Virus record (IMG/VR): IMGVR_UViG_3300024239_000013
Coordinates: 248,001-312,000 of that record
Length of the DNA: 64,000 nucleotides
Strand: one strand, 5' to 3'
Shown: positions 24,503 to 61,800 of the stretch, in pieces
How positions within the stretch are numbered: position 1 is the first letter of the stretch
Layout of the letters: every line of letters begins with the position of its first letter
Notes under the pieces: generated by a model
The model's database searches: none
Seen by the model: the letters and a program-made list of their open reading frames with translations, nothing else
What the model was told of the DNA's origin: nothing
Translations under genes and position numbers: made by a program

Positions 24503-26239
24503 CTAATGAATTCCATATTTATAATTACCACAGTCCCATATTTTATAATATCCCATAGAATGCATAATATCATCAGCTTTTAAGTTTGGATCAAATCCAA
24601 GAGAAATCAATTTAGATTTTGTCCAGTTTAGTCGATTAGATTTTCTATCGTCAACAACCCAATAATATCCAGGAGTTGTTTTTCCGATATAAATAAATCC
24701 ACTTTTATAATAAGAAGTTTCTTTGTGATTGGGGGAGAAAGAAACATCGCAATAAGTAACTATAGATTTGGTAATATTATCTTTTATATACTTAATAATC
24801 CTAGAAACTCCACCAACTACAGTTGTATTAATAAGACTACAACTTCTGATTACCTCATATTCATATTTAGATTTTTTACTATCTATTAATTTTCTAGTTT
24901 TCGCTAAACTCATCAGAGAAACTAATACATTCTCGTAATATAATCCTATTATTATACTTGCTGGACAATATCCCTTGAGATGATTCTTCTGTGTAAAATG
25001 CTTATATTCACTTTTAGTGACCTGTTTTATTTCACACTTTCTGGCAAAAATTTTTCTTGAAATAGCACCAACTGCAGAAGATATCATAGACTTAACTATT
25101 TCTTTTTTATACCTCCAATCATCCTCCCATATATGATATAAACTAATACCTTTACTTGATAAAAATTCAGTTTTTTCTTGGTGATATTTAGAATTCTTAT
25201 ATATCTCAGAGTGCCAATAAAGTCCATTAAACTCAAAAGCAACGTTTATTTTTGGCAAATAGACGTCAACTTCAGAAAATTGTTTATTGTTTTTAAATAA
25301 ACTTCTATTATTAGATAATACCTCTCCAGGATATATTTCTTCTATATATTTTAGTAATTCCCTTTCCAAAACAGAAGATTTCATGTCTATTGGGTTACAA
25401 TATGGACATGGATCTATTCCATTTCTAAGTTTAGCATTTATAGTTGTTGAATGGAAACTAAAATCATGATTGCATCTTTCACAATTTAGATCAACCTTAG
25501 TTGTCGAATAACTAATCAATCCAATAGAATAAGAATCCAATTTACTAGAAAGTGTTTTTTGCTTAGTTATCGATGAAGACTCCGAAACTTTCTTAGCTAT
25601 TTCAGGATTTTTCATAGTATTCTCGTGTCCATACTTAAGAATATTGGTATTTCTTGACGACTCCGAATTAATAAAATCCAAGGTTCCATATTTTTCAATA
25701 CAGGTTTTAAGTCTTTTTTCAGAAATCTCCTTATTTTTTAAGGGAGAGTCTACACCATATTTTTCATTAAGGGTTTCCCTTATTTTTTCTTTTACTTCAT
25801 TGGATTTGAAATTATGATCAACCCCATATTTTGTTAACATAGTAGCTTCATATTTTTTTCTTTCTTCCGAACCTTTTTTGAAATACGAGTCTCCGTATTT
25901 TGACTTTATTGTATTTTTAAAACTATCGACTTTAATTTTTCTTTTACATTCAGAATTACCACATGTATTAAAGTAACCATCACTGAATCTATAGAATTTT
26001 TTAGGGTTTCCGCATATGCACTTTTCTACTAATTCCAAATTATTTATTATATGATATAATCTTTGTCCTATAGTAATGTCAAAATATACTTGATTTAGAA
26101 AATGTGTTACGTTCTCGATATCTGAAATTAATTCCTTATCGTTCCTTATTCTAGTGAATATGCCATTTAATGACATATTATTCGAAAGCTTATCGTTGAT
26201 GTCATTCGTTATTAATATCAGATTATTGCTAAGTTTCAT
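24503..26239 (-). mobile_element. free-standing homing endonuclease-like gene (KYG repeats, CxxC, PD-(D/E)xK/Vsr-like nuclease, GNAT/Mom-like C-terminus)
   Basis: EKYGV repeats, CERC/CPYC, EVDVYLP..AFEFNGLYWHS, HIWEDDW, ARKCEIK..YCD..IWDCG; sits downstream of the MCP terminator. Confidence 0.6.
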
Positions 26240-26329: not shown

Positions 26330-28042
26330 TTATGCTAGACCTCCTGCAGGTACATTAACAAAGAATGTTAAGTACATAGTTTCAGGTAACATACCAGCTT
26401 CAACTAGAGCGTATCTAGATTTAACTGCTATTTTAGGTGACATAGTACCTTCAGAGATTGTCTGAATTGACTCTGCCATCATATAAGGCATGAATTTAAG
26501 ACCTGGTTCGTCGTCTCCACCTTTTCTACCAACTAATACTCTAGTATCTCCGTAGCTCATGTTTTGATCTACATAAACAGTCATACCAGCAAGAGATCCT
26601 ACCGGATATAATGTACCGTTATTTTGAGTTAGAGTGTTAGAGAAAGGAGCAAAAGTGAATTGAGAGATGTCTTGAAGTGCACTTGCAACTGCAGCGTTTG
26701 TTACGATGAAGTTAGCTGGACCTCTTCTACCTCTGTTAGCTACTACGTTAGCAGCTGCAAGAATTCTAGAGAATAATCTTCTTTGTAAAGTTGATAAGTT
26801 CTCGTAAGAAGTTGATGCAGGACCTGCTGGAATAGCCATAGCTACACCTTGATCTGATTTATTAACGTAAGCTGCTGTTGTACCAGTAGATCCGTTAAGT
26901 ACTAAGTTTAAGTTCAAGTTTTGGTTTTCAACGTTGTTGAATTGAACGTGGTTAGACCAACCTAGAGCAAATGCTCTTGAAAGGATGTGCTTGTTAATTG
27001 CTTGAGAAACCTCGTTAACTAATGCATTCTCGATCATTGAAATAACGTCGATACCGAATTGTTTGTTAAGGTCTTGGATTTGCTCAGTTGTAACTGAAGC
27101 AGCAACTTGGAAAGTCTCAGCTTCTACGAACTTAGTGAAAGTAGAAAGACCCATTGAGTTATAGTAAGTAGATTCAGCTACTCCTCTTAACATTGGGTTA
27201 TAAGTTTTAGTACCATCAACATAAGGTCCTTGCCAATCAGCATCGTTATTGAAACCAGCACCAGAGAATCCTTGGATGTGATCTTCTAAAGCTTTAACTA
27301 ATTGAGCAACGTATCCGTTAACTGAAGTAGAAGTACCAGTGTACATACCGCTAGTACCAACTTGTACTGAAGTACCGTTGACGATAGAAGCTATTGTATA
27401 GTTTTGAGTAACTCCAGCAACCTCGAAAATTGGGAAACCGTCAATTCTTGAAAGTCCAACGAAAGTTAAAGTTAAAGTACCACCGTTAACTACAGTGTAA
27501 GAAGTTCCTACTGTAAAAGTACCAGCTGTAGCACCAGTAGCACCAGCAGCAGATCCTTGATAAACAGGGAATTTAATCATTGATGGAGCTTTTGCTAAAG
27601 CATCTGCAGCAGAAGCATCTGAGCCAGTAGCACCAGCTAATTTACCACCTGCATATACATAATCTAGATAAGATAAGATACCAGTTGGTCCTGACATAGG
27701 AATAACAGGAACGATATCAAACCCGATTGTTTTAGCAGCTACTTGAATAGCTAAAGGTAACAATGATGGGAATTTATCTCCTGAACCTTGCCAAGATGCG
27801 TTATAGAAACCAGCATTAGCACCAGTTGATAATCCACCTGCTCCTGGGAATGATGGAGGGGTTACGTTACCCATACCATTTACAACACCTAAAGAGTTAT
27901 ATGCACCCGCAGATTCGTTTAATGAGTGATAGTGACAATATTTAGTTAACCACTCTTTTTTGCTTGAGTCAGTGATTCCTGCTTTACTCTCGATGATAGG
28001 AGACCAGGTTTCATAGATTTCTTGTTCGTTAATCAATTTCAT
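26330..28042 (-). CDS. gp23: major capsid protein, T4 gp23-like
   Basis: DIVPVIPMSGPTG, TEQIQDL, EVSQAINK, RGPANFIV, FMPY, PKIAVKSRYAL; strong codon bias; SLNES processing site. Confidence 0.92.
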   Translation of the reverse strand: MKLINEQEIYETWSPIIESKAGITDSSKKEWLTKYCHYHSLNESAGAYNSLGVVNGMGNVTPPSFPGAGGLSTGANAGFYNASWQGSGDKFPSLLPLAIQVAAKTIGFDIVPVIPMSGPTGILSYLDYVYAGGKLAGATGSDASAADALAKAPSMIKFPVYQGSAAGATGATAGTFTVGTSYTVVNGGTLTLTFVGLSRIDGFPIFEVAGVTQNYTIASIVNGTSVQVGTSGMYTGTSTSVNGYVAQLVKALEDHIQGFSGAGFNNDADWQGPYVDGTKTYNPMLRGVAESTYYNSMGLSTFTKFVEAETFQVAASVTTEQIQDLNKQFGIDVISMIENALVNEVSQAINKHILSRAFALGWSNHVQFNNVENQNLNLNLVLNGSTGTTAAYVNKSDQGVAMAIPAGPASTSYENLSTLQRRLFSRILAAANVVANRGRRGPANFIVTNAAVASALQDISQFTFAPFSNTLTQNNGTLYPVGSLAGMTVYVDQNMSYGDTRVLVGRKGGDDEPGLKFMPYMMAESIQTISEGTMSPKIAVKSRYALVEAGMLPETMYLTFFVNVPAGGLA

Positions 28043-28071: not shown

Positions 28072-30060
28072 TTACCTTTTTGAGAATTTTTGCTCTAGTG
28101 CTGAAGCTATATAATTCATATAATCATTTGAATAAGCTTTTGGAGCATCGTCTTGAGCTAGATTTTCATTCTCGTTTAGTTTTTGAACACCAACTGGTTT
28201 AGTCCCTAGCTGTCTAGTAGACCAGAAGTTTTTGATCTGGTAAGGTGTATCTAATCTATAGAAGTTACTTTGAGCAATGATAGATTGCTGGTGGCCTTCG
28301 TTAAGAGATTCCCAAACCTGAACATATTCTTCAGGCATCTCGTCGATAAACTTAAGTCCTGTTTTGTTAGTGTTCTCGTTAAGAGTTTCTTCTGCCTTCT
28401 GTGTGTCGGCTGGTGCTTCTACAAATCTAGAAGCTTCGTTTATATTTGATTCAGTTTTTTGTGTTTTAACTGATTCTATCAAATTGTCAATTTTTGTTGA
28501 AAGATTATCATAATCTCCAGCAAATCCAGATTCATTTAAACCTGCTTTAGCTGAAAGATCTACGCTTTCTCTTAGTGATTCTTCTTTTTGCATAATTCCG
28601 TTATTAACGCTTTCTGCTATATATTCAGTATAAGATATTGATCTTTTAACTTTTTCTGCTAAATATTCAGAATAATCCAATCCTCTATTAAGATTTTCAG
28701 CTAAATAATCAGAATATTCGATTGATTTGTTTAAGTTTTCTGCTAAGTACTCAGTATATTCAATTCCATCATTTAGTTTTTCTGCTACGTATTCAGTGTA
28801 GGCAATACCTTTATCTAAGTTTTCTGCAATATATTCAGTGTAAGCAATACCTTTATCTACATTTTCTGCAAGATATTCAGCGTAGGCAATACCTTTATCT
28901 ACATTTTCTGCAAGATATTCAGAATATTGGATATTCTGATCAACTTTCTCTGCAAGATACTTAGAATATTCAATGGATTTATCTACATTTTCAGCAACAT
29001 ACTCAGAATAAGAAATGGATTTATCTACATTTTCAGCTAAATACTTAGAATAAGAAATATTCTTATCAAGATTTTCAGCTAAATATTTGCTGTAGCTGAT
29101 ACTAGAATCTAAATTCTCTGCAAGATATTCTCCGTACTTGATAGCATTATCTAAGTTTTCAGCAAGATATTCAGAATATTTTTCTAATTTTTTTACTCTT
29201 TCTTCTAGTGCTGAAGTATTAGAAGATTCATCAGATTCTGTCAATTTTTCTCTTTGGTCTTTAATTTCTGCTATTGAACTTTTCATAGCATCCATCTCTT
29301 TTTTTAAGAAAATCGAATATCGATTAAGTTCTTCTGCAGTAACAAGTTCTTTATTCTCCATGAGGATTGTTTTATTTTTGTCTATTTTTGATACGAGTTT
29401 GTTAAATTCTTCGTTATTTTCAACTTTATATATCTTTACTGAGGATTCATTTTCTAGGCCTAATGATTCATTCACACAAATTAAATCAGATAATACACTA
29501 GAATTTCTCATTTCGAAAAATTCTTCAAATGTATAACCTGCACTTTCATAAACTCTTTCAAGCTGTGCGTCTTGAAATCCAGGATCTGCAACTAGGTCGT
29601 AAGTAAATATCTTTTTAATTTGAACTTTCTTATCGTTACCTACCGCTCCTGCTGCTCTAGATGATATAGATAAAGGAACTCCAGCATCTACTAATTTCTT
29701 AGCAATCTGACCCGCTGGTGTATCTAGAAGTCTTACTTTAATTCTAATTTCTCTAGTATTCTTATCGTAAGTAAGATCCGTAATTATGTGGGATATGTTT
29801 TTTAAAGAAACGTCAAACTTTTCTGGGTGGTCTAATTCTCCAACCAGTCTTTTTTGAGCTATCTTATCTTTAAGATAATTTAAATGTGGAAGATATTCAG
29901 CTTCTTCATATATCCTATTGTTGTTGTTCTCTTTTCCGAAAACAGCAGCAATACCCTCAAGTACATATTCTTCAGAATCTGTTTTTTTAGATTCCAAAAC
30001 CGTTTCCTGTCTTTCTAGAATAAAAACTAAATCTTCGTTCAATTTTTGAGTTGTCGGCAT
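28072..30060 (-). CDS. gp21: prohead protease (gp21-like) fused to scaffold/core domain
   Basis: NNNNRIY, GELDHP, LLDTPAG, ISSRAAG, TYDLVADPGF, then 14 x 14-aa repeats. Confidence 0.88.
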   Translation of the reverse strand: MPTTQKLNEDLVFILERQETVLESKKTDSEEYVLEGIAAVFGKENNNNRIYEEAEYLPHLNYLKDKIAQKRLVGELDHPEKFDVSLKNISHIITDLTYDKNTREIRIKVRLLDTPAGQIAKKLVDAGVPLSISSRAAGAVGNDKKVQIKKIFTYDLVADPGFQDAQLERVYESAGYTFEEFFEMRNSSVLSDLICVNESLGLENESSVKIYKVENNEEFNKLVSKIDKNKTILMENKELVTAEELNRYSIFLKKEMDAMKSSIAEIKDQREKLTESDESSNTSALEERVKKLEKYSEYLAENLDNAIKYGEYLAENLDSSISYSKYLAENLDKNISYSKYLAENVDKSISYSEYVAENVDKSIEYSKYLAEKVDQNIQYSEYLAENVDKGIAYAEYLAENVDKGIAYTEYIAENLDKGIAYTEYVAEKLNDGIEYTEYLAENLNKSIEYSDYLAENLNRGLDYSEYLAEKVKRSISYTEYIAESVNNGIMQKEESLRESVDLSAKAGLNESGFAGDYDNLSTKIDNLIESVKTQKTESNINEASRFVEAPADTQKAEETLNENTNKTGLKFIDEMPEEYVQVWESLNEGHQQSIIAQSNFYRLDTPYQIKNFWSTRQLGTKPVGVQKLNENENLAQDDAPKAYSNDYMNYIASALEQKFSKR
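28610..29180 (-). repeat. 42-bp (14-aa) coding tandem repeat, 14 copies of Y-x-E-Y-L-A-E-N-L-D-K-x-I-x
   Basis: Counted directly in the translation. Confidence 0.92.
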
Positions 30061-40770: not shown

Positions 40771-41742
40771 TTATAAATTGAAATATTTACTATTATAGAC
40801 ATCTTCTATCCCGACCGAAACCGCACCTACACTAGAGCATGCGATAGATCCAGCTATATTACATAATTTTAAAGATTCTTTTATATCCAACCCAGAAGAA
40901 AAACATAAAGATATCATAGCGGTAACGGTATCACCAGCACCCGAAACGTCGGAAATTTTCACAGGATATGAAGGAGAGTGATATGATTCATTAGCAGTGA
41001 TGAAAATTACCCCATTTTCTGATAAGGTGACTAGTATAGATTCTATACCTAATTTAGATATAATATTCCTTCCCTCATAAACTATGGAATCGAAATCATT
41101 GGGACTCAATTTTTTATTGATTAAACTACAAAACTCTAAGAAATTGGGTTTAATCAAAGTACAACCGCTATATGAATCAAAATTTTTTAATTTAGGGTCT
41201 ACTAATACTGGCTTATTTTTTTCCTTGCAAATTTTTATAATTCCCTTTATAAGTACAGAGGTTAATAATCCTTTATTATAGTCCTCCATAATAACACAAT
41301 CATAAAAATCTATAACGGATTCTATTTTTGATAATATAATAGATTCTAAATTACTATCAATATCAATTATATCCTCATTATCAACTCTTAATAATTGATG
41401 AGAATTTGAAATGTATCTTGATTTAGTAGTTGTCTTTATTCCCGACCTTTTTATAAGAAGGCTGAGATCAGATTTTTCTGAAACCAAACTTTCTACCTTA
41501 TCTCCATTAAGATCATTTCCTATAACAGAAATAATATCGCTATATCCACCTAAAGAATGAATGTTTAGAAAAACATTACCTGCCCCTCCTAAATAGTAAT
41601 TTTCAGATTTATTTAATAATACCGGTACTGGAGCTTCTGGGGATATTCTAGATACGATTCCATTTACATAATGGTCTAGCATGATATCTCCAATGACCAA
41701 TATTTTAAGTCTGGAAAAAATATCCCTGATGTCTAGATTCAT
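40771..41742 (-). CDS. rfaE: heptose-7-phosphate kinase (RfaE/HldE kinase domain, PfkB family)
   Basis: GDIMLDHY..RISPEAPVPV, GGAGNV, DYNKG, VDPK, DVSGAGDT. Confidence 0.85.
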   Translation of the reverse strand: MNLDIRDIFSRLKILVIGDIMLDHYVNGIVSRISPEAPVPVLLNKSENYYLGGAGNVFLNIHSLGGYSDIISVIGNDLNGDKVESLVSEKSDLSLLIKRSGIKTTTKSRYISNSHQLLRVDNEDIIDIDSNLESIILSKIESVIDFYDCVIMEDYNKGLLTSVLIKGIIKICKEKNKPVLVDPKLKNFDSYSGCTLIKPNFLEFCSLINKKLSPNDFDSIVYEGRNIISKLGIESILVTLSENGVIFITANESYHSPSYPVKISDVSGAGDTVTAMISLCFSSGLDIKESLKLCNIAGSIACSSVGAVSVGIEDVYNSKYFNL

Positions 41743-41774
41743 TTGAGATTGAGTTTTTTAGAGATTATTTATTA

Positions 41775-43442
41775 TTATAGTGTCACTTCCGGAGTTTCTT
41801 CATCTGTTCCCCCTTCTGCTGGTGTTGTTCCCTCGGTCGGTGAAACTTCTTCACCAGTAGCGGATTCTGCTCCAGCTTCTCCTGATTCTGCTTCATTTTT
41901 TTTAGCAGCTTTAGCTTCCTTTTCTTTATAGATTTTATTCATTTTTATTTCGTCTGGATTCATTCCAAGAAATCTCTGGATTAAGAAATCATTATCGAAA
42001 TAAGATTTTTCCTCTTCTCCGACTTTAACTTTAAGTTCAGCTAATCCCTTAATAAATTCACTTCTTTTTGTAAATGACGTCATCTGTACAGATTCCTCAA
42101 ATTCATTATCTCTATAAAAATTTAAACCAAGATTTGATTTAAAGCTTTTATCTTTAGATAATTCAGGATGATCTAAGCACATCTGAATATAAAGAGGTTT
42201 TACTAGGATCTCCTGGAATATCGATCTAAGTCTTCTAAGGAATTTTTCAAATCTTATTTCGTCTCTTTCTAGCTGATCTATAGCTATTTGATAATTGGCA
42301 GGTGTTCCATTTTTAGAGGCAAATCTAGCATAAGGTATTTTAGAATCCATTTTAAGTTTATTGAAGAAAAATAAAACACTCTCCATCACATTAAAATCTG
42401 GTCCAGATGGGTTTAACGATTCTATCTGTGGGGACTGCCCATCTTTCTCGGGAAACAGATAATTCTTATAGAACTGAACTTTAGGTCTACCGTTAATCGT
42501 CAATTCTCCAGAAGCATCATTGATAGAAATATCCTCTTTATAGTTAGACATCAGTTGTCCCAATGTTTGCATAGCTTTTTGTGAAGATTGACTTCCTATA
42601 GGTATAATAAATTTAAGTCTATATGAAGCATTCATAACATTCCATATAACTCTGGAGTTTTCCATTATTCTTAGAATATTATAAGATCTCACCAATCTTT
42701 CTACGTAACTTACTCTTGAAATACTATTTCCCTTTGCATAAGAAATATAGATAACCTGTTCGTTAGTGAGTTTTCGGGTCATCTGTGGATTTTTTGGATA
42801 TTGTAGCCAAAATTGAACATATTCGCTTTCTCCAACCTTTTCAACTACAGGTTGCAAAGAAGCAGGATCTAATTCTTTAAATCCTATAATCTCTTTCCCC
42901 TTGTTATCATAAATTATTTCAAAAGCTAAAAACCCATCTATGAGAAACTGTCTAAAATACTGCCACCCCAAAACACTATTCTGAAATCCAAAAACATTAT
43001 ATATTCTATTATAATGTTTGAACATTTTTTCCTTCATTTTTTCCTTCAGATCCATGTTGATAAATGAGGGTTGTGCAAAATAATTTCTATCGTCGTAATT
43101 TATTGCCTCGTCACTAATAGTATCCAATATAAATTCTATCTCACCATTCAAAGAAAACTTTCTGAGATAATTTCTCTTATCGTTATAGTCTCTATCGAAA
43201 TATGCAATATATTTTCTTACCTTTGTATCCTGGTAAGAAGCTGTCCAATAAAAAGCATCATTTTGGGTAAATCCTGTTCCCTCTTGACTGGAGAAGAATC
43301 CCTCAGTTTTCCCAATGGCCTGTGAATTTCTCACAACCATATCGTCATACTGCATACCAAATTTTGATATATTCCCTAGATTTTTTAATATATTACCTAG
43401 TGCGGATTGGTTTGGTTTTAAATAATCTAAAAATCCTGCCAT
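41775..43442 (-). CDS. gp20: portal protein gp20-like, copy 2
   Basis: FRQFLIDG, SYVERL, KIPYARF, RDEIRFEKFLRRLRSIF. Confidence 0.85.
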   Translation of the reverse strand: MAGFLDYLKPNQSALGNILKNLGNISKFGMQYDDMVVRNSQAIGKTEGFFSSQEGTGFTQNDAFYWTASYQDTKVRKYIAYFDRDYNDKRNYLRKFSLNGEIEFILDTISDEAINYDDRNYFAQPSFINMDLKEKMKEKMFKHYNRIYNVFGFQNSVLGWQYFRQFLIDGFLAFEIIYDNKGKEIIGFKELDPASLQPVVEKVGESEYVQFWLQYPKNPQMTRKLTNEQVIYISYAKGNSISRVSYVERLVRSYNILRIMENSRVIWNVMNASYRLKFIIPIGSQSSQKAMQTLGQLMSNYKEDISINDASGELTINGRPKVQFYKNYLFPEKDGQSPQIESLNPSGPDFNVMESVLFFFNKLKMDSKIPYARFASKNGTPANYQIAIDQLERDEIRFEKFLRRLRSIFQEILVKPLYIQMCLDHPELSKDKSFKSNLGLNFYRDNEFEESVQMTSFTKRSEFIKGLAELKVKVGEEEKSYFDNDFLIQRFLGMNPDEIKMNKIYKEKEAKAAKKNEAESGEAGAESATGEEVSPTEGTTPAEGGTDEETPEVTL

Positions 43443-43446
43443 TTTA

Positions 43447-45036
43447 TTATAATGTTACTTCCGGGGTTTCTTCACCTTCACCCTTATTTTCGGCTTTCTT
43501 TTTTTCCCTTTCCTTTCTTTCTAAAGCTTCTTTATTTGCAACTATATCTTGTTTAGAAATACCTAAGTAGTTTTCTATAAGAAAAGCATTAGAAAAATAC
43601 GGTTCTTCATTATCTCCTAAAATTCCACTCATGGATAGAATTGCTTCTTTCTTCTTTTCTATTGTTGCTATTTCCTGATTTATTTTAAATGGATTATCAG
43701 AGAAATAATCTAAACCTAATTGGCTTTTAAATAAGAAATCATCTTCAAGATTAGGATATTTCTTAACCATTTGTATCCAAAGTGGTTTTATTAGAATCTC
43801 CTGGAAAGTAGATCTTAGTCTAGATATGAATTTTGAAAATCTTATTTCTTCCTTATCCAGTCCCTCTGCACCATTTGAATAAGGAGACGTACTTCCTCCA
43901 TCTGGATTATGAAACCTAGAAGGAGGTACTTTAGATTCTAATATAAACTTATCGAAAAAATAACTCAAAGGTTGAGGATCGTTTAAATTAGGACCCTCCG
44001 TATTTATAGGTTCTATAGTAGGTGTACCATTTACACCAGAAGGCATCAGATAGTTTTTGTAGAATTGTATCTTTGGTCTACCGTCTATTGTCAATTCACC
44101 ACTTTCATCATTAAGTTCTATATCCTCCTTATAAATGCTCATTAGTTCGCCTAGAGTTTGCATTCCTTTTTGCTGGGATTTAGATCCTATCGGAACTGTC
44201 ATTTTCAGCTTAAATGAAGCGTTCATAACGGACCAAATAACTCTAGTATATTCCATGATTCGTAGAATATTATAGGGTCTTATAAGTCTCTCTATATAGC
44301 TTATTCTTGATATAGCATTACCCTTCGCATAAGAAATATAAATTATCTGTGGATCATATAAAACTCTTTTTCTTTTAGGATCTTGTGGATATTGTGTCCA
44401 TGTATTTATAAAAGTCCCATCTATTTGTTTTTCTACACTAGGAACTAGGGTTACCGCATCTAATTCTTTAAATCCTATTATATTTTCTCCTCTATCATCA
44501 TAGATTATCTCAAATGCTAAGAAACCATCTATTATAAATTGTCTGAAATATTGCCAGGCTGTTATATCGTCCGAAAATCCCCAGATGTCATATAATTTTT
44601 TATATGATTCATAAAGTTCATCCTTTAATTTTTCATTTATATCAGTAATATCAATAAAGTCGGGATAAGCAAAGAAATTTGAAGGATCATAGGATATCGA
44701 CTCGTCACATATAGTATCTAGGACCCATTCAATCTCAGGATTAAGTGAGAATTTTCTTAAGAAATCTCTTTTCCCTTTATAGTCCTTATCGAAATATCCG
44801 ATAAACTGTTTAGTAGTTATATCCTGCTTTGCTAAAGTCCATAACATACTTTCGTCCTCCACGTTGGACTTATTCTTGTTTAAGAAGTTTGCTTCGGTTA
44901 CACCTACAGCCTGTGAATTTCTGATGACCATGTCATCATACTTCATACCAAAGGTACTTATCTTCCTAACAGAGTCTCGGATTCTCTGTATAACAGGAGT
45001 CTGTGATGGATTATTATTATCTACAAAGCCAGCCAT
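43447..45036 (-). CDS. gp20: portal protein gp20-like, copy 1
   Basis: FRQFIIDG, SYIERL, KVPPSRF, KEEIRFSKFISRLRSTF. Confidence 0.85.
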   Translation of the reverse strand: MAGFVDNNNPSQTPVIQRIRDSVRKISTFGMKYDDMVIRNSQAVGVTEANFLNKNKSNVEDESMLWTLAKQDITTKQFIGYFDKDYKGKRDFLRKFSLNPEIEWVLDTICDESISYDPSNFFAYPDFIDITDINEKLKDELYESYKKLYDIWGFSDDITAWQYFRQFIIDGFLAFEIIYDDRGENIIGFKELDAVTLVPSVEKQIDGTFINTWTQYPQDPKRKRVLYDPQIIYISYAKGNAISRISYIERLIRPYNILRIMEYTRVIWSVMNASFKLKMTVPIGSKSQQKGMQTLGELMSIYKEDIELNDESGELTIDGRPKIQFYKNYLMPSGVNGTPTIEPINTEGPNLNDPQPLSYFFDKFILESKVPPSRFHNPDGGSTSPYSNGAEGLDKEEIRFSKFISRLRSTFQEILIKPLWIQMVKKYPNLEDDFLFKSQLGLDYFSDNPFKINQEIATIEKKKEAILSMSGILGDNEEPYFSNAFLIENYLGISKQDIVANKEALERKEREKKKAENKGEGEETPEVTL

Positions 45037-45069
45037 TTAAATAATACTTTATTAATTTTATCGAATTTC

Positions 45070-45672
45070 TTAAATTAATTTCGATCTATATTCATTATAT
45101 ATCCCCTGTATGGATAACCCCTCTATCATATTAAAACTAAGATAAGGAATTTTTGGCCAATCCTCCATGGAAATAACCTTAACATTTTTTATGAATTTAT
45201 ATTTAAATCCAAAATAGGAATTTAAATATCCAGTACCTTTAAGAATATTCTTTAGCACAGGGTCCTTTAAATTCACTGGAACTTTGGTCGATCCTCTTTC
45301 GTATGAATTCTTATTAGCTAATAATTGTTCATAGAAATTATCATATATTCTTTCTATTATATCAACTCTTATTATATTCGGTACAGTTATTAAATCTATA
45401 CCTTTTATTACAGTTCCAGATTCTAATGTGTTGAAAACATCGGTACAAATAACAAGAGGCATTCGATCTACGAAAGGCCTTTTTTTGCTAATTTCAGAAT
45501 CCGTTAAATACCTAAAAGAGTAAATCTCTCCTGGGATGAATGGAGGAATGAAAGATATATCTGGTGAATCGTTCTTAAAATATTTACTTAAGAACAGATC
45601 ATTAGTTGAAGTGAATATGTTTCCCGAACTAGTTTCATCTTCTTTGTATTTAAGAACTAAATCTTTATACAT
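45070..45672 (-). CDS. DNA end protector gp2-like (tentative)
   Basis: PGEIYSFRY..DRMPLV pattern; adjacent to gp4. Confidence 0.5.
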   Translation of the reverse strand: MYKDLVLKYKEDETSSGNIFTSTNDLFLSKYFKNDSPDISFIPPFIPGEIYSFRYLTDSEISKKRPFVDRMPLVICTDVFNTLESGTVIKGIDLITVPNIIRVDIIERIYDNFYEQLLANKNSYERGSTKVPVNLKDPVLKNILKGTGYLNSYFGFKYKFIKNVKVISMEDWPKIPYLSFNMIEGLSIQGIYNEYRSKLI

Positions 45673-46157
45673 TATTTACTTTTAAATAGGAAATTTTCAT
45701 CAATAACACCAAATTTATAGCCCCTTTTTTCAGCCCATATTTTTGCAGCTTTGAATTTTGCTTGGTTTGTTATCCAGATCTGCATATTTCTATTATATGA
45801 TTTTAACTTTGCAACCGTCATCTTACCCTCATAAATTGGTTTTTTCGTTTGATTCTCTGGTTTTATTTCAATTATCCATTCTTGAGCATCTCCAGATTCC
45901 TTTACAACCTTGATATAAAAATCTACATTATATTTATGCTCTTTTTTATCTAATGGATTATAATACTCGATAGCAATTGGTTCGGAACTCCACTTTACTA
46001 TAGAATCATTTGTATCACAATACGTACAAAAACGATACTCCCAAGAGGATCTATATATGATGTTATGAATATCTCCTATATACTTTTCAGGATTTCTGGG
46101 TTCGTATTTACCGGATTTATATTCACCGTTTGGTTTTATCTTCTTTATATCAGGCAT
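45672..46157 (-). CDS. gp4: head completion nuclease, gp4-like (TnsA-like)
   Basis: GKYEPRNPEKYIGD, YRSSWE, WSSE, YNVDF, EIKP, NQAKFKAA. Confidence 0.85.
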   Translation of the reverse strand: MPDIKKIKPNGEYKSGKYEPRNPEKYIGDIHNIIYRSSWEYRFCTYCDTNDSIVKWSSEPIAIEYYNPLDKKEHKYNVDFYIKVVKESGDAQEWIIEIKPENQTKKPIYEGKMTVAKLKSYNRNMQIWITNQAKFKAAKIWAEKRGYKFGVIDENFLFKSK

Positions 46158-46163
46158 ATGGTA

Positions 46164-46523
46164 TTAAATATTATATGAATTATCATCACCAGTGATATAG
46201 CTAAATGGTATAGTTTTAGGATTTTTAGGGGGATGTAATTTTTTCCATCCCTTAGCAAATCCATTTTTAGCAATCTGTGTAAAATAAGCAAATGGATTAT
46301 TAGACTTTTCAGGATTGAATCGATTCCAATATTTACAGAGATCTTCCATAGCAAAGGCCATACAATCTTCTTTATCTTCTGGATCTTTATATGACATTTT
46401 CTTAGCTATACCGTTTATCATTAAGGTAAACATTTCTATAGTTTCCGGTGTCAGCTTACCGGCTTTCTTTGATTCTATTACAGCAAGCATAAGCTCACTA
46501 TTTTTAACATATTCTTTTGCCAT
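46164..46523 (-). CDS. gp55: late-transcription sigma factor, T4 gp55-like (short)
   Basis: YVKNSEL, FNPEKSNNPFAYFTQIAKN; start reassigned to ATG 46523 because the longer ORF crosses a terminator and promoter. Confidence 0.8.
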   Translation of the reverse strand: MAKEYVKNSELMLAVIESKKAGKLTPETIEMFTLMINGIAKKMSYKDPEDKEDCMAFAMEDLCKYWNRFNPEKSNNPFAYFTQIAKNGFAKGWKKLHPPKNPKTIPFSYITGDDNSYNI

Positions 46524-46549
46524 TAATTGTTTAATTAGTTTGGATTTAT

Positions 46550-46578
46550 ATTCTAGTATAAAAAATGGTAAATATTTC
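46550..46578 (-). promoter_or_regulatory. middle-type promoter GAAAT-N18-TAGAAT (late sigma gene)
   Basis: Between terminator and ATG 46523. Confidence 0.65.
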
Positions 46579-46580
46579 AT

Positions 46581-46617
46581 AAAAAAAGAATGTAGCTTTT
46601 TGGTTACATTCTTTTTT
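46581..46617 (-). terminator. intrinsic terminator
   Basis: aaaaaagaatgta ... tacattctttttt inverted repeat. Confidence 0.75.
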
Positions 46618-46775
46618 ATTTTTATTCCTTTCTTCTCCGGTTTCGTCTGCATCCGAATCGTCTTTTATTTCTTTTCCATCTGGTGCCTTACTTAATTTTC
46701 CTTCCGAAGATTGAACGAAGGGTTCACCCGGTTTATTTTGATCTTCCGATTTTGGAGCAAAATAAAAGTTACGAC

Positions 46776-49163
46776 TTAGTTTTTTTTTAAAGTTTCAGAT
46801 TCGGTTAAATTCCCATCATTTTCAACTTTACCCTCTCTAAGATTATATCCAATTTCATATTTTTCCCCATCTGCATCTTCTGCATCAAAATTAGTTTTAT
46901 CTTTGGTTTTAGGTGAATCAGCTAAAAGTTTTTCTCCTTCCACTTTACCCTTTTCTTTTTTATTGTTTCCTGGGGCTTTTGCAAGATCGTCATTACCATC
47001 TTTCTTCTTAGCTTCGTTCATAGTAATATTATACCCATGAAGAGAATCTAATTCCATTTCTATGGAATCTTGTTCTCCCTTAGGAGCTTTAGAAAAACTG
47101 TGGCTATCTGCAAAATTCTTTAAAAGAGTTTTTTGCTCTTCTATGCTTAGGTCTGATTTATTAAGATTATTTGACTCTTTAACTTCTTCTGCTTCCTCCT
47201 CCTCTTTAGCATCTTTTTCATTTTTATCTGCAGCTTGACTTAAAGCTTCTTCCAAATCAGAAATTTCATTAACTAGGAAATCTTCGGTTTTTCCGTTGTC
47301 TAAAAGTATAGTATATCTTCCAGATGTCCCATCTACTGAAATTATCTTACCGGTTTCTCCTGATTCTTTAACTTTTATAAAATCTCCAATATTGAATTTT
47401 TCATCTTCTGATATATTAATTTTGTCAGCAAATGAAATTTCTTCTTCTATTTTAGATATTTCAGTGTTTATTTGGTTCCATTTTTCTCTTAGAACATTTA
47501 GTTCGTTTTCTAATGCAGATTTAGCAGTTAGAATTTCATTAGAGCTTTTATATAAAGGTGAAGATTCTAATAAAGAATTTATTTTATTAATCTCATTCTC
47601 AACTTTAGAAATATTTTCTAAAACTTTATTTCTATCATTTACCATGATAGATTTTAGTTTATTTTCGCCTTCCAAGAACTCAGTTAACCCTTCCGAAATA
47701 TCATATTTTAAATAAGACTTAACCATAGAAACTGCTTGAGTTCCACTAACTTTGAAAATTGAATTTTCATTCATAGTTTGGTTAATCTTTTGTAAATAGA
47801 TCTGATTATTCCACTTGAACATATTTACACCAACTCCTTCATAGATATTAGAATTTATACTTTTTGCAAAATCTAACTCAACTATATCTGAATAGTTATT
47901 GTATAAGAACATTGTATCATTAACAACTTCTGATTCATTTACTCCAAAATAAGAGCTAGACTCTAATCCTAATATTTTAGCAAGTCCAATATTATCTGAA
48001 AATCTTAATTTATCTTTTCCTAAATAAACTGCTACATTTTCTCCCTCTTCTACTAGTTTAACTATTTTTTTACCAAATCTAATGGAAATACCATTCTCAT
48101 TAATAGTAACATGTGGTTTTTTAGTAATCTCCACTAATTTAAGATAATCTGAAGGTAATTCAGAAACCTGTTTTTCTGTTAATTTAACTAATTCTTTTTC
48201 TGATGCTTCGAATACAGAATTTCCTATATGGAAGAAAGTTCTTCCATTTTCAAATAAAATAGGCGAGTAAACTCTAGAAACGCTAGATTCACCCTGAGCT
48301 TTTATTGGAATTTCCAAGAATCTATTATCCTCTTTCTCGTTTATATTTAGAAAATTTATTAAATTTCTAACAACTGGATTGAAACTATATTTAGAAATAT
48401 CTCTAACTAATAAACCATTTGACTTTTCTTCTGAAACCAACCAAGAATTTAAAGTTTCAGAAAGTTCAGAATAGAATGCATAGCTTCCACTATTTTTGAT
48501 AGATTCTAAAACTTTAGAAACCTCAATTTCTCTAGAATATTTTTTAGCTTTATTCTTTAACTCTTCTGCTATACCTCTAACTGAATTTTCCCAATTAAAA
48601 GATTCTAATTCAGCAATAAAATTATTCACTACAACAAACTCAGGAAGATTCTTATTTAAAATAAGATTCTGATATTGTTCAAAAAGTACTTTTGCTTTAG
48701 GATACTCACAGATAGAAGATTCTTTCAACTTGGAAATTGCCTCCATAACTCCCAAGTTTTTAATTCCTTGAGATTCAATAAATGAAATAGCAGATCCGTC
48801 TTTATCTTCTAAACTAGATATACTCTCTAATAGTTTTTCAGATTTGGCATCGTCCATTTCATTACCAGGAAGATATGATCCTGAATTTGATGATGTGTTT
48901 TTACCTAATCCTGACCAAGATTCCATAAGTGCTTCTGCTGCTCTTTTAGATACCTCAGCTTCTTCCTTTCTTATTGCTTCAATGTGATTGACAATACTAG
49001 GAGATTCGTTTTGTGTCATTTCTGAATTATTATGTTCGTTGATAGAAGCTATTAATTGATCTTTAGAAACGGATTCGCCTCTAAGAAAACTCTCACATAG
49101 TGATTTTACCTCTGGAGATTTTGTTACCTCTTTTAATTTTTTTACTTGGTTTATAAAGTCCAT
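46776..49163 (-). CDS. large acidic virion/prohead-core-like protein with KOW-like domain; possible -1 frameshift extension
   Basis: 795 aa; many (I/L/M/V)xE sites; FNIGDFIKV..GKIISVD; late motif at 49186. Confidence 0.5.
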   Translation of the reverse strand: MDFINQVKKLKEVTKSPEVKSLCESFLRGESVSKDQLIASINEHNNSEMTQNESPSIVNHIEAIRKEEAEVSKRAAEALMESWSGLGKNTSSNSGSYLPGNEMDDAKSEKLLESISSLEDKDGSAISFIESQGIKNLGVMEAISKLKESSICEYPKAKVLFEQYQNLILNKNLPEFVVVNNFIAELESFNWENSVRGIAEELKNKAKKYSREIEVSKVLESIKNSGSYAFYSELSETLNSWLVSEEKSNGLLVRDISKYSFNPVVRNLINFLNINEKEDNRFLEIPIKAQGESSVSRVYSPILFENGRTFFHIGNSVFEASEKELVKLTEKQVSELPSDYLKLVEITKKPHVTINENGISIRFGKKIVKLVEEGENVAVYLGKDKLRFSDNIGLAKILGLESSSYFGVNESEVVNDTMFLYNNYSDIVELDFAKSINSNIYEGVGVNMFKWNNQIYLQKINQTMNENSIFKVSGTQAVSMVKSYLKYDISEGLTEFLEGENKLKSIMVNDRNKVLENISKVENEINKINSLLESSPLYKSSNEILTAKSALENELNVLREKWNQINTEISKIEEEISFADKINISEDEKFNIGDFIKVKESGETGKIISVDGTSGRYTILLDNGKTEDFLVNEISDLEEALSQAADKNEKDAKEEEEAEEVKESNNLNKSDLSIEEQKTLLKNFADSHSFSKAPKGEQDSIEMELDSLHGYNITMNEAKKKDGNDDLAKAPGNNKKEKGKVEGEKLLADSPKTKDKTNFDAEDADGEKYEIGYNLREGKVENDGNLTESETLKKN

Positions 49164-57619: not shown

Positions 57620-58195
57620 TTACAAGAAAAGGTCTTCCCAATAATCACAAACCCAACTAGTTGTTATTGTATAGATAGTTGCTTGTTCATAGTCTAGTTC
57701 CATGGGATTTATAGCTTCACTCAAGAAACATGAGGGTATTCTTATTCTCCTAAAAACATCCCCTCTTTTATTAAAGATTGATATTGAGATAGATCCTACA
57801 TAGTCTGCTTTTATCCCCATTGCACCTGTAAGAGGATTATAAATTAAATCTGACCATTGTCTAAGTATTTTATAAACGCTCATCGAATTAGCATCATTTA
57901 AGTTAACCTCAAATTCCATGGTCAATGTCATATCACTTTGAGAAGGTTCTCCCCCTGCATATCTTCTTGTTGCAAACTTATAGTTTTGGTTAATAGTCTG
58001 TGCAGGAGCAATATCAACAGCTAACCCTGTTATAGATTTAACTTGTTGTGCTAATATTCCCTCCCCATTAAATGCCGTTGTTGCATCTAAAATACCAGCA
58101 GGAGGATTTATAATAACTTCAAACTGGTTCAAAAATACCGGTTCATAGTTATTTATTGCTGCTTTAGAATTCGTAAAATGTGGTAATCCTGCCAT
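57620..58195 (-). CDS. gp19: tail tube protein gp19-like, copy 2
   Basis: Directly after sheath and tube 1; LRQWSDLIYNPLTG, DYWEDLFL. Confidence 0.8.
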   Translation of the reverse strand: MAGLPHFTNSKAAINNYEPVFLNQFEVIINPPAGILDATTAFNGEGILAQQVKSITGLAVDIAPAQTINQNYKFATRRYAGGEPSQSDMTLTMEFEVNLNDANSMSVYKILRQWSDLIYNPLTGAMGIKADYVGSISISIFNKRGDVFRRIRIPSCFLSEAINPMELDYEQATIYTITTSWVCDYWEDLFL

Positions 58196-58212: not shown

Positions 58213-58767
58213 TTATAGGAATAAATCTTCCCAATAATCAACCGCCCAAGTCATATCGTCAATTTTATATAAATCGGTAGAGGTATAATTTAAATTCATA
58301 GGAGATATTGGTTTAGTAGGAAAGCAATCCTTACATGTTATTCTTCTAAAAACGTCTCCTTGTTTATTAAAAATCGATATAACTATAGTTCCCGTATAGT
58401 CGCTTTTAATGCCCATTGCACCAGTCAATGGATTATAAATCAAATCTGACCATTGTCTTAATGTTTTGAAAACATACATAGAGTTAGCATCATTAAGGTT
58501 TACAGTAAAACTTAAACTAACGTCCATAAATGTATTTTCGGGTTTAGCTCCAGCATAATTTCTTTTAGCAAATTTATACTTTTGGCTAGTTACTCCGGGA
58601 TTCTTATCTAAAGAAAGTCCGCTAACCTTAGTAACATGTTGGAGTAATATTTCACCACCAGCTACAGCAGCAGGAGGTATTATTGTTACCTCGAACTGGT
58701 TCAGATAAACAGGTTCAAATTTGTTTATAGCTGAAAGTGAATTTTGAAAATGTGATAGTCCTGCCAT
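58213..58767 (-). CDS. gp19: tail tube protein gp19-like, copy 1
   Basis: Follows sheath; same motifs as copy 2. Confidence 0.8.
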   Translation of the reverse strand: MAGLSHFQNSLSAINKFEPVYLNQFEVTIIPPAAVAGGEILLQHVTKVSGLSLDKNPGVTSQKYKFAKRNYAGAKPENTFMDVSLSFTVNLNDANSMYVFKTLRQWSDLIYNPLTGAMGIKSDYTGTIVISIFNKQGDVFRRITCKDCFPTKPISPMNLNYTSTDLYKIDDMTWAVDYWEDLFL

Positions 58768-58811: not shown

Positions 58812-61800
58812 TTATACAAATTGTATAAATCCTCCTGATGATATTCCTCCTGTTTTACTAACAGTAAGTCTGTTGATGAATTTTTGAATTCCTTTTGCAG
58901 GTTCAACAATAACATCAATTATACCCATATTCATATCTATGATTGAAGGGGTGTTATTAGAAGCATCCATAATAGTCTGATATGCATAAATACCTCCTCC
59001 TGCTCTAACTCCATCAAGATAATTATCAACTAAAGTTTTTATCTCAAGTCTGATTGTGTCTTCATTGAAATCAAAAAGATAATTAGCTAGAATTTCTTGT
59101 ACGTCAGTTTCGATACTAATTAAAAGATCTCTAACATGTATAAGATTAAAAGCAGAGTTAACTTGTTGATAAGCAGTTTGGTTACCATAGATGGCTACAC
59201 CAACCCCTCTTCTTTTTATAATTGGATTGATACCAAAAGGCTCTAAATTACCTCTATCTTCTTCATCGAAATCATATTCAACCCCTACTATATTAGATCC
59301 GCTTATTAAACCTCTTTTTTGACCAGCAATGATAGCATAAGGTTCTCCGTTAGAAAATTTTCTAAGGAAATTGTTAGAAACAAATGCTGCAGGAGGAACG
59401 TTTATATTTCTATTTCCCTCTCTTACTGTTATGTATGGAGCATAGAAACCACAGAATTTAGCTCCATCTTCTTCGCTAGGTAAGCTGAAAGTGTAGGTTG
59501 GATTTAATGATAAATTACCTCCTTCCGTAATATAAGCTGTATTTAGCTTAGGATATGGGTTTACAGAAGTAGGAGCATCGGTAAATCTAGGGTCTGTACT
59601 AGCTCTAAATTGTTCCATAGAAGGAGCATTTATAATAGCAAGTGCTTGTTGTCTTAGTTTAGCAAGTCTACTTAATTGATATTTAGAATTAGGTAGAATT
59701 TGACCAGAGAATGTGTCTACAATATATCTAAATGATATAACGTCTTTAGAGGATAAAGTTTTAGCTATGTTTGTGTTGTACATAACATCTAAAATCTCTG
59801 ATATTCTCGCGTCTGTTCCGTTAGGTCTATGCCAATCATTCATACTAAATCCTGAAAGATATGAGAAATCAAAAGATCTAGTAAATTGAGCAATAGATGC
59901 AAATTTTTGAACTCTGACCCCATTAGCAGTAGAATAGTATAATACAGGTCTTGAAGAAACTACTTTATAAATACCTGCTGTACTAGTTCTTGAAACTGAT
60001 GTAATTTTAGCTAATCTATTTTGTCTGTTTCCATTAACATTTTCACAAACATCCAAGTCTGTAGATACTACCAAGTCACCTACAGAAAATGGAACATTAC
60101 CGTTCAAATCTAATCCAATAGTGAACGTATTAACATCTATTCTTGTACAATCAATAAATTGATTAATGGAACCATTTTTAGAAACGATATCAAATTTCTG
60201 AGTGTCTACTGGATATCCAATATTATCTGAAGCATATGTCGTGCCAAAAGAAGGAACGTCTGTTATCGTAGCATCATCTAGATCTACATTGCTATAAGCC
60301 CTAGTATAAACTAGATTAAATTGGTCTCTATCTACTGTAGATTCAAACCCCAAATATCTAACTTGCGTTCCTGCAGAGTTAATCCAAGCAAGATCCCCTG
60401 TAGTAATTTCCGAATATTTATGATCCTGATAAAGTTGGGATGCATTATAAGCTAAGATTGCATTAGAAATACCCAAAGGTGCTCCAGGCCCAGTTATTCC
60501 ATTAGGTGTAAATATACTTTCTATATTAACATAATCCGAATTACCAAATTGATAAGCTTTAGCGTAGAACGGTTGGCTACTTCCCGATGCTCCTGTATTA
60601 TAAGAATTTAAATTATAAGTAGGGGTAACGGTTATACCCTGAGATCTATAGAAAGGAGTATCTAAAGGATGTGTGAAATAAATTCTAAGTGCTCCAGAAA
60701 CCTCCTTAGTTCCAGTAACTTTAAGTTTAACTATACTTGCTTCAGAGAATTGATTTATTAATGCACCTGTTAATCCCCCAGTGTATCCTGAAACTACTCC
60801 TAGTATAAATTTCTGATCGTTTGAAGAGGTAACACTTAAGAAACTTTTAAGTTCAGCAACATCTGTATTATTTTGGATGTAACCTGCGGTAACACCATAA
60901 GTAGTTTTAGTTTGCAAATAATGTAAACCACTATCATAAGCAGAAGGATCATAGATTTCAAAAGAATCAGAAACGATCCCTGCAGTAGCTCCTTCGGAAC
61001 CGGTTAAAGTAAATAAAGTACCAACTTTAGTTCCTGTAGTAAATACAGTTGCTCCAGTTGGACTAGTAAATCCAGTAGCACCAGTTACACCAACTACTTT
61101 TTGAGAGTATAAGTAATCTGCAACTAAAACCTGGTCATAACTTAAGAAATTGATCTTTGGTGTTTTAAGGTCTCTGTCTCCTGTTAATTCATCAATTAAG
61201 TGGTTACCAACTAAATCTATTCTAGATGTATTTTGACAAATGCTATCAAATGCTTGTTCATCAATAGCACAGAATAACCCAGTTGACGGAGTATTATTAT
61301 TAACTAGTGTTTGTATATACTGATTAACTCCATTTAAATCAACGAAATCTGGAATTATACATCCAGTAACATTCGTAACAATAGAAACATCAGGATCGTT
61401 TAGAAATTGATCAATTCTATCTTTTATAAATCCATTATTGGTAAAATATTTACTCCATTTCGGATCTATTGAAAGTGCTTGATAATTTGTCCAGTTACCA
61501 TAAACTGCTATAACATCAATAAAATAATCAGATATGTAATCATAAGGGTGCATGAAACTAGGAACATTATCAGCACCATACCAATCTATTGCGAAAATAT
61601 CATAACCTTTAAGCGGCTTATTAGAATCTGTAGATTTTCTAACTATTACGCTCATAGGTGATTTACCGAGATTCGTTAAATTAAACAATTTACCTTGGTC
61701 TTCTACGCTTAGTGTTGCAAGGAAATAATTTGGATCTGCAAACCAGAATCTCTCCTTATTATAATAAGAAGAATAAAGTCTGCTTGTTACAACACCATTA

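Follow-up and report, generated by a model that had tools for sequence, protein, structure and literature searches.

Two intact, tandem genes encoding T4 gp20-type portal proteins, referred to here as A (the upstream copy) and B (the downstream copy), were identified in a 319,334-bp phage genome, and the same pair was retained in a large group of uncultivated giant phages. The analysis centred on a window of 64,000 nucleotides of this genome, and the coordinates within the window are listed in Table 1. The existence of two full-length, diverged portal genes in tandem, as described in the original prediction, was confirmed. Its interpretation, that retention of both copies reflects a heteromeric ring or a second specialised vertex with a shared C-terminal docking peptide, was only partly supported.

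Table 1. Features of the two-portal locus (window coordinates)
Position	Strand	Feature	Size	Supporting evidence
43447-45036	-	Portal paralog A	529 aa	ORF; PF07230 (3.5e-56); phrog_213
41775-43442	-	Portal paralog B	555 aa	ORF; PF07230 (8.6e-64); phrog_213
43443-43446	-	Spacer between the stop of A and the ATG of B (coding strand TAA-TAAA-ATG)	4 nt	Sequence
45025-45036	-	MAGF N-terminus of A, at the position of the T4 gp20 N-whisker		Sequence and ortholog comparison
43431-43442	-	MAGF N-terminus of B		Sequence and ortholog comparison
43450-43521	-	C-terminal tail of A (about residues 506-529), lysine/glutamate-rich linker ending ETPEVTL (43450-43470)		pLDDT below 50 for residues 519-529
41778-41924	-	C-terminal tail of B (about residues 507-555), acidic Gly/Ala/Pro/Thr-rich linker ending ETPEVTL (41778-41798)		pLDDT below 50 for residues 521-555
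45070-45672	-	Upstream neighbour, at the position of the gp2-like (DNA end protector) gene in relatives	200 aa	No family hit of its own; the gene at this position in relatives carries PF26869 Phage_T4_gp2
45672-46157	-	Head closure (T4 gp4-like) gene		phrog_218 (8e-48); PF08722
46164-46652	-	Late sigma factor (gp55-like), beginning the conserved block sigma - gp4 - gp2 - portal(s)		phrog_234; same order in relatives

The two proteins are 48% identical over 558 columns by BLASTP (E = 0). Both match the Pfam profile PF07230 Portal_T4 far above the cut-off of 22.9 bits, with 191.2 bits over profile positions 9-431 of 433 for A and 216.3 bits over positions 4-428 of 433 for B, and they are the only two Portal_T4 matches in the genome. 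The AF2 model of A (pLDDT 74) returned T4 gp20 chains as its best PDB matches (9mkb, 6uzc, 9lu7 and 3ja7; E 1e-19 to 1e-14, probability 1.00), with a sequence identity to T4 of only about 16-17% in the structural alignment. The AF2 model of B (pLDDT 76), with which no fold search was made, has the same order of helices and strands, and both copies keep the N-whisker, wing, stem, clip, tunnel loop and crown. The genomic context is that of head, neck and packaging genes, as the sigma factor, head closure and gp2-position genes lie directly upstream on the same strand, TerL, sheath and tube genes lie further up, and the order is conserved in relatives. The 4-nt spacer provides a second in-frame stop for A. 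In a six-frame scan of the whole genome, the heptapeptide ETPEVTL occurs only at the two portal C-termini, and no other protein carrying the same tag was found. The tail codons differ at 3 synonymous positions and no stretch of the two genes is near-identical in DNA; the pair is therefore old, and is neither a recent copy nor an assembly artefact.

Decay of one copy in relatives had been named in advance as an observation that would count against the original prediction, and it was not seen. Both copies were intact, in the same order and 1-23 nt apart in every one of the 80 related viral contigs with enough flank, in which the A orthologs are 66-91% identical and the ortholog identities of the two copies are equal. 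Across 58 non-redundant genomes the median spacer was 9 nt. Two full-length genes were also found in 5 related large genomes, and four genomes rated complete, two of them with terminal repeats, have exactly two portal genes each. In phylogenetic analysis, A and B formed reciprocally monophyletic clades with mirrored branching, each with 100% support. One further lineage (P0121), whose A copy is only about 50% identical, also has a B-like second portal 10 nt downstream; P0121 groups with A at 97.7% support, and grouping it with B is rejected (p-AU 0.017). A single duplication predates lineages whose A copies are only about 50% identical. Five sister lineages (P0122, P0125, P0126, P0133 and LR756500.1) have one portal. 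The median dN/dS was 0.023 for A and 0.019 for B, and retention of both copies by selection is therefore shown.

To address where the copies differ, columns fixed within each paralog were compared. There were 31 columns fixed differently in A and B, against 169 fixed identically, and the differences were enriched outside the capsid-facing part. Only 4 of 84 conserved columns in the N-terminus and the first part of the wing (wing-1) differed, against 27 of 116 in the stem, clip, tunnel loop, alpha-8 and crown (Fisher p = 2.8e-4), although this domain split was chosen after seeing the data. When the sites were polarised with outgroups, B carried the derived state at 17 and A at 13, so neither copy is simply the original. 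The sites were not mapped onto a 12-mer interface. In T4, the clip forms the inter-subunit beta-sheet and binds gp17 and gp13 (PMC4493910; PMC12929587).

The proposal that ETPEVTL is a docking peptide shared by both copies was weakened. The MAGF start is conserved in all A and B orthologs and in most single-copy relatives, and the MAGF start and an acidic or glycine-rich linker ending in a hydrophobic residue are found across single-copy relatives and in T4 gp20 itself, which ends in QEQEDF. Only 25 of 58 non-redundant genomes share 4 or more identical C-terminal residues between A and B. In about 19 of 58 genomes, A ends in PPAT, PPQE or PPTE with no hydrophobic tip, while all 58 B orthologs end in a hydrophobic residue, mostly as [VFI]-T-[LI]. 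Recent gene conversion as the source of the identical ends was rejected for this genome, as 5 of 8 tail codons are identical and there is no near-identical DNA stretch. Across genomes, however, tail codon identity was 63% against 50% in the core, with single cases such as one at 9 of 9, and occasional conversion of the 3' ends is therefore likely elsewhere.

The best explanation, to which we assign a probability of roughly 0.45, is that both genes encode working, non-redundant portal subunits that arose by one ancient tandem duplication and then subfunctionalised. In this view, the genes would be translated from one transcript, and the products would most likely co-assemble into a single mixed dodecameric ring, probably alternating A6B6, at the one portal vertex of the capsid. 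Both copies keep the parts that embed a portal in the capsid, namely the MAGF N-whisker, the FGMxYDDMVxRNSQAxG block and the first half of the wing, while each has fixed its own residues in the stem helices, the clip (the docking site for terminase and neck), the tunnel-loop/alpha-8 channel lining and the crown. A ring of two alternating subunits would have six-fold rather than twelve-fold symmetry, which matches the six-fold neck and tail. The analysis establishes the paralogy and age of the pair, its universal co-retention, strong purifying selection on both copies, their symmetric divergence, the location of the differences, and the presence of single genes for the major capsid protein (MCP), the prohead protease and the terminase (TerL), whereas co-expression at similar levels, co-assembly, alternation and the change in symmetry are inferred.

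Direct evidence of co-assembly is lacking. A complex prediction of A (residues 20-505) with B (residues 20-505) from paired alignments, performed without controls, scored 0.01, a value which is no evidence either way and leaves the association of the two subunits undecided. Assembly into a dodecameric ring at one capsid vertex and presence in virions were not measured, no transcript or virion protein data were obtained, and no cultured member is available. The relation of the recently isolated ~390-kb Flavobacterium jumbophages FKo-1 and FTs-1 (accessions within PZ831762-PZ831801, PMC13573597) to this clade was not tested. The RNA-Seq runs that contain the sequence are wastewater and other metagenomic libraries flagged as probably DNA and were represented by contigs only, so they say nothing of transcription; they do show near-identical strains with only substitutions inside both ORFs. 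No terminator-like site lies between the genes, and promoter and terminator scans, as well as a scan for the T4 late-promoter motif TATAAATA, were at chance level. A search for a neck-protein duplication to match a C6 portal returned only one weak T4_neck-protein match, in an 829-aa ORF just outside the window, which is uninformative. No two-portal phage and no heteromeric portal was described in the papers searched.

All of the evolutionary signals fit two separate homomeric rings equally well. The two paralogs could form homododecamers with different jobs, one nucleating the prohead and the other sitting in the mature packaging and ejection vertex; they could mark two virion populations; or a second ring could lie elsewhere, stacked or at another vertex. 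The paralog-specific residues include clip beta-strand positions that form the inter-subunit sheet in T4 and could make each copy self-specific, and the differences in the clip and channel would suit different partners. Mimivirus offers a precedent for separate exit and packaging portals in one capsid (PMC2430901), though with unrelated proteins. However, the genome has one MCP, one prohead protease and one TerL and no gp24-like vertex paralog, both copies keep the capsid-anchoring N-terminus and wing equally well, the tight spacing suggests similar dosage, and no tailed phage is known to have two portal rings. We regard separate rings as less likely than a mixed ring, and a second specialised vertex, in particular, has no support.

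It is more doubtful still that one copy is the structural portal while the other has taken over a non-structural, host-directed role, such as inhibiting stringent-response enzymes as T7 gp8 does or acting as a decoy for portal-sensing defence, with the duplication resolving a conflict between the two roles. The portal proteins of T7, P1 and N4 bind RelA and SpoT and moonlight as counter-defence factors (bioRxiv 10.64898/2026.01.27.700999), which shows that a portal can have a second function that a duplicate could take over, but T7 gp8 is a single gene doing both jobs, belongs to an unrelated portal family, and nothing here points to a host-directed role. Both copies evolve equally slowly, their derived states are split between them, and they share the same secondary structure, whereas host-interaction proteins usually evolve fast and shed structural constraints. 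A redundant, dosage-raising or decaying duplicate, or an assembly artefact, is effectively refuted by the saturated synonymous sites, the intact copies in more than 80 independent contigs from many samples, the strong purifying selection and the paralog-specific fixed sites; nothing beyond the bare fact of duplication speaks for it.

The locus departs from the canonical system of one portal gene per genome. Among GenBank phages, 2,217 records with a gp20-like match gave 2,219 places, and the two extra places are a 101-aa fragment in one genome deposited twice, so that none has two full copies. T4 gp20 (PF07230; PDB 3JA7, 6UZC, 9MKB) shares the family, the fold, the tail style and a neighbourhood of gp2-, gp4-, TerL-, sheath- and tube-like genes, but is encoded once. 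The nearest relatives by sequence are the portals of huge uncultivated phages, at 44% identity to LR756500.1 (462 kb) and 36-37% to Lak megaphages, together with metagenomic portals beginning MAGF; these share the start, the tail style and the gp4-gp2-portal synteny but are single-copy. T4 gp23 and gp24, the major capsid protein and its vertex paralog, provide the model proposed for A and B, as a structural gene was duplicated and both copies were kept because each fills a different, quasi-equivalent position in one assembly. However, gp23 and gp24 form separate hexamers and pentamers rather than a mixed ring, and nothing comparable is described for portals.

We also noted that the two-portal genomes have two tail tube genes where LR756500.1 has one. 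A more far-reaching possibility, held only tentatively, is that a widespread clade of 290-430 kb environmental phages builds its portal as an obligate hetero-dodecamer of alternating paralogs, lowering the ring from 12-fold to 6-fold symmetry to match the neck and tail, and that the tube duplication reflects a coordinated move to two-subunit rings along the DNA conduit.

The portal is the textbook homo-dodecamer of tailed phages and herpesviruses, and how its 12-fold ring, seated in a 5-fold vertex and joined to a 6-fold tail, handles these symmetry mismatches is a long-standing question on which two diverged subunits, kept for a very long time in a large natural group of phages, give a direct handle. 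A mixed ring would be the first heteromeric portal and would show which parts can be specialised position by position (the clip, channel loops and crown, but not the capsid-facing wing), while separate rings would represent the first tailed phage with two portal assemblies. In addition, g20 is used as a marker of T4-like phage diversity (PMC5259590), and two paralogs per genome at about 50% identity would be counted as two lineages.

Analysis of the minus strand of the 319,334-bp IMG/VR virus record from which the window (bases 248,001-312,000) was taken, and which is rated as complete by CheckV, showed two consecutive portal ORFs, here termed A and B. The two ORFs are separated by the bases TAAA, which provide a second in-frame stop that is followed by the ATG of B. 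The encoded proteins align end to end at 48% identity. Both matched the Pfam Portal_T4 profile (PF07230), with scores of 191 bits for A and 216 bits for B against a cut-off of 22.9 and with coverage of almost the whole profile, and both matched phrog_213 'portal protein'. No other portal matches were found in the genome. The AlphaFold2 models had a mean pLDDT of 74 for A and 76 for B and showed the same order of helices and strands, and the best PDB matches of the model of A were the T4 gp20 structures 9MKB, 6UZC, 9LU7 and 3JA7. Both proteins begin with MAGF and end with ETPEVTL, a heptapeptide that occurs nowhere else in any frame of the genome. The original prediction, that two full-length, diverged portal genes lie in tandem 4 nt apart, was confirmed in every detail.

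Features of the portal region and of other loci noted in the analysis, in the order read along the minus strand for the window (window coordinates unless marked otherwise)
Feature	Position	Strand	Product length
829-aa ORF upstream of the terminase region, just outside the window	genome 312,859-315,348 (1859-4348 of the extracted stretch L093)	-	829 aa
Large terminase	62248-63876	-	
Tail sheath	58812-62165	-	
Tail-tube paralog	58213-58767	-	
Tail-tube paralog	57620-58195	-	
Highly acidic protein rich in lysine and glutamate	46776-49163	-	795 aa
gp55-like late sigma factor	46164-46652	-	
gp4-like head-closure gene	45672-46157	-	
Gene at the position where relatives have a gp2-like gene		-	200 aa
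Portal A	43447-45036	-	529 aa
Portal B	41775-43442	-	555 aa
PfkB-family sugar kinase and (ATP-dependent) DNA ligase, between portal B and the clamp loader	40771-41742	-	
gp44-like clamp loader		-	
Prohead protease	28072-30060	-	662 aa
gp23-like major capsid protein	26330-28042	-	
HNH/homing-endonuclease-like gene	24503-26239	-	578 aa
Paralog of the HNH/homing-endonuclease-like gene	genome 174,378-175,952		
Tandem array of 11 paralogous genes, outside the window	genome 38,629-50,802	+	231-315 aa
Other expanded paralog families	genome 105-121 kb		
ORF in phage LR756501.1 matching part of the portal profile (L087)	LR756501.1 15,166-15,351		101 aa

The portal genes are preceded by genes for packaging, tail and head closure, with nucleotide-metabolism and unknown genes lying between the tail-tube paralogs and the late sigma factor. 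The acidic 795-aa protein just upstream of the late sigma/gp4/gp2/portal block had no family match. The 829-aa ORF carries the only match in the genome to the T4_neck-protein profile (PF11649), over residues 332-385, with a score of 26.8 bits against a cut-off of 25. One prohead protease and one major capsid protein lie further down, and the genome therefore has one head-building gene set and two portal genes. The protease matches cover only residues 19-234 at most of the prohead protease ORF; the long C-terminal part, which includes an acidic repeat-like region, may be a fused scaffold or core protein, and such a protein would be a candidate partner for the portal tails. The HNH/homing-endonuclease-like gene (phrog_3339, 6e-103) lies directly after the major capsid protein gene, and its paralog elsewhere in the genome is 32% identical to it.

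To address how widespread the pair is, IMG/VR was scanned for relatives of A, which identified 292 stretches, and the best 80 of these (66-91% identity) were analysed. Decay of one copy in relatives had been put forward in advance as an outcome that would refute the original interpretation, and it was not observed: in every locus with enough downstream sequence, the A ortholog was followed by an intact B ortholog, and A and B stayed about 50% identical to each other throughout. The gap between the genes was 1-23 nt, with a median of 9, in 58 non-redundant genomes. Five large related records, of which four are rated complete and two of these have direct terminal repeats (373 and 430 kb), were searched whole, and each of the five had exactly two portal genes. 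A partial A ortholog is filed in GenBank under an Actinobacteria MAG (NCX05047.1), which is probably a binning artefact.

In a maximum-likelihood tree that included 74 more distant portals, A and B were each monophyletic at 100% support, with mirrored internal branching, and together with one representative, P0121, they formed a clade at 99% support. The contig of P0121 showed a second MAGF portal ORF 10 nt downstream, which carries the B-specific KYIAYFD signature. P0121 grouped with A at 97.7% support, and forcing it to group with B was rejected (p-AU 0.017). The duplication is therefore older than a split at which A orthologs are only about 50% identical. The nearest other lineages, namely P0122, P0125, P0126, P0133 and LR756500.1 (which equals P0124), each have one portal. 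In P0122 the portal is followed directly by the clamp loader, without the intervening sugar kinase and DNA ligase genes. Among the GenBank phages, 2,217 records matched A at the protein level in 2,219 places, the two extra places being one 101-aa crown-like fragment in a genome that was deposited twice. In the 735-kb phage LR756501.1, a 101-aa ORF far from the full portal gene matched only the C-terminal part of the portal profile (positions 374-431). No report of two portal genes in a phage was found in full-text searches of the literature.

For ortholog pairs with unsaturated synonymous sites, the median dN/dS was 0.023 for A and 0.019 for B. Strains 98-99% identical to window 41000-46500 occur in wastewater libraries labelled 'RNA-Seq' and in several older public runs; these differed from the window only by substitutions inside both ORFs, and the only indel, at 41754, lies outside the ORFs. 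Across the 58 genomes, 169 alignment columns were fixed to the same residue in A and B, while another 31 were fixed in each copy but to different residues. About 20 more columns were conserved in only one copy, in roughly equal numbers for A and B. The domains were mapped using the alignment with T4 gp20 and the published T4 boundaries, together with the secondary structure of the model. The paralog-specific columns were rare in the N-terminal region and the first wing segment (4 of 84 conserved columns, against 27 of 116 in the stem, clip, tunnel loop, alpha-8 and crown; Fisher p = 2.8e-4), although this split was chosen after seeing the data. In T4 the N-whisker and wing face the capsid, whereas the clip carries the inter-subunit beta-sheet and binds the terminase and then the gp13 adaptor, whose arm inserts between the alpha-6 helices of adjacent portal subunits. 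When the 31 sites were polarised with 22 outgroup portals, B carried the derived state at 17 and A at 13. Both copies have changed, which is the pattern of subfunctionalisation and not of one original gene plus one drifting copy.

ETPEVTL had been proposed as a docking peptide shared by the two copies. The MAGF start is shared by most single-copy relatives, and many of these also end in an acidic or glycine-rich stretch closed by a hydrophobic residue, for example ...AFTL, ...NFGF, ...GDMF and ...APSL. T4 gp20 itself ends ...QDPDQEQEDF. These are family traits and are not features tied to the duplication. Within the two-portal clade the tails of A and B often co-vary within a genome (APAVTL, APEVTL, PPQVTL, TPAVTI); only 25 of 58 genomes share four or more identical terminal residues. 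In about 19 of 58 genomes, A ends in PPAT, PPQE, PPTE or similar, with no hydrophobic tip, while all 58 B proteins keep one, mostly [VFI]-T-[LI]. The codon identity in shared tails was 63%, against 50% at identical residues in the core, with cases such as 9 of 9 codons, and occasional gene conversion of the repetitive 3' ends probably adds to the similarity. In this window 3 of 8 tail codons differ, and no part of the two genes is near-identical in DNA. The tail is predicted to be disordered, and by analogy with the T4 crown it would point into the capsid, where the scaffolding core is the suspected partner, a role that is inference only.

The interpretation offered with the original prediction, of a heteromeric ring or a second specialised vertex with a shared docking peptide, was partly supported. 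While the age, conservation, constraint and complementary divergence of the pair are shown, the arrangement of the two products is inferred. In the reading we favour, both genes are needed, and both look like full structural portal subunits that sit in the same capsid environment. The simplest mechanism consistent with one capsid gene set, tight translational linkage, equal constraint and complementary divergence is one ring made of both subunits, most simply alternating A6B6. We place this reading at a probability of about 0.45. The one direct computational test available, a complex prediction, returned no answer. Such a ring would have six-fold symmetry; in T4 the 12-fold portal hands over to a 12-mer of gp13 and then to a hexamer of gp14, and a two-subunit portal could make part of that step itself. 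Two separate homomeric rings with different roles are considered unlikely, and a structural copy plus a moonlighting copy, a possibility prompted by the work on T7 gp8 and RelA/SpoT, less likely still. A similarly small share is left for arrangements that we have not thought of, while redundancy, decay or artefact is effectively excluded.

Each protein is a member of the gp20 portal family by sequence, fold and context. What departs from every described system that we could find is the conserved pair: the parts are known, but the two-subunit arrangement is new and of unproven architecture. The two tandem tail-tube genes (phrog_32623 and tail tube families) are likewise paralogous, at 58% identity. 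Four related two-portal genomes also carry two tail-tube genes, which are 58-62% identical to each other, while the single-portal relative LR756500.1 has one match; a second ring-forming structural gene was therefore duplicated in the same clade. This hints that ring-forming parts of the DNA conduit were duplicated together, although it rests on one comparison. Expanded paralog families of unexamined function were also present elsewhere in the genome, the 11 genes of the tandem array being 48-77% identical to each other and accompanied by one more distant member.
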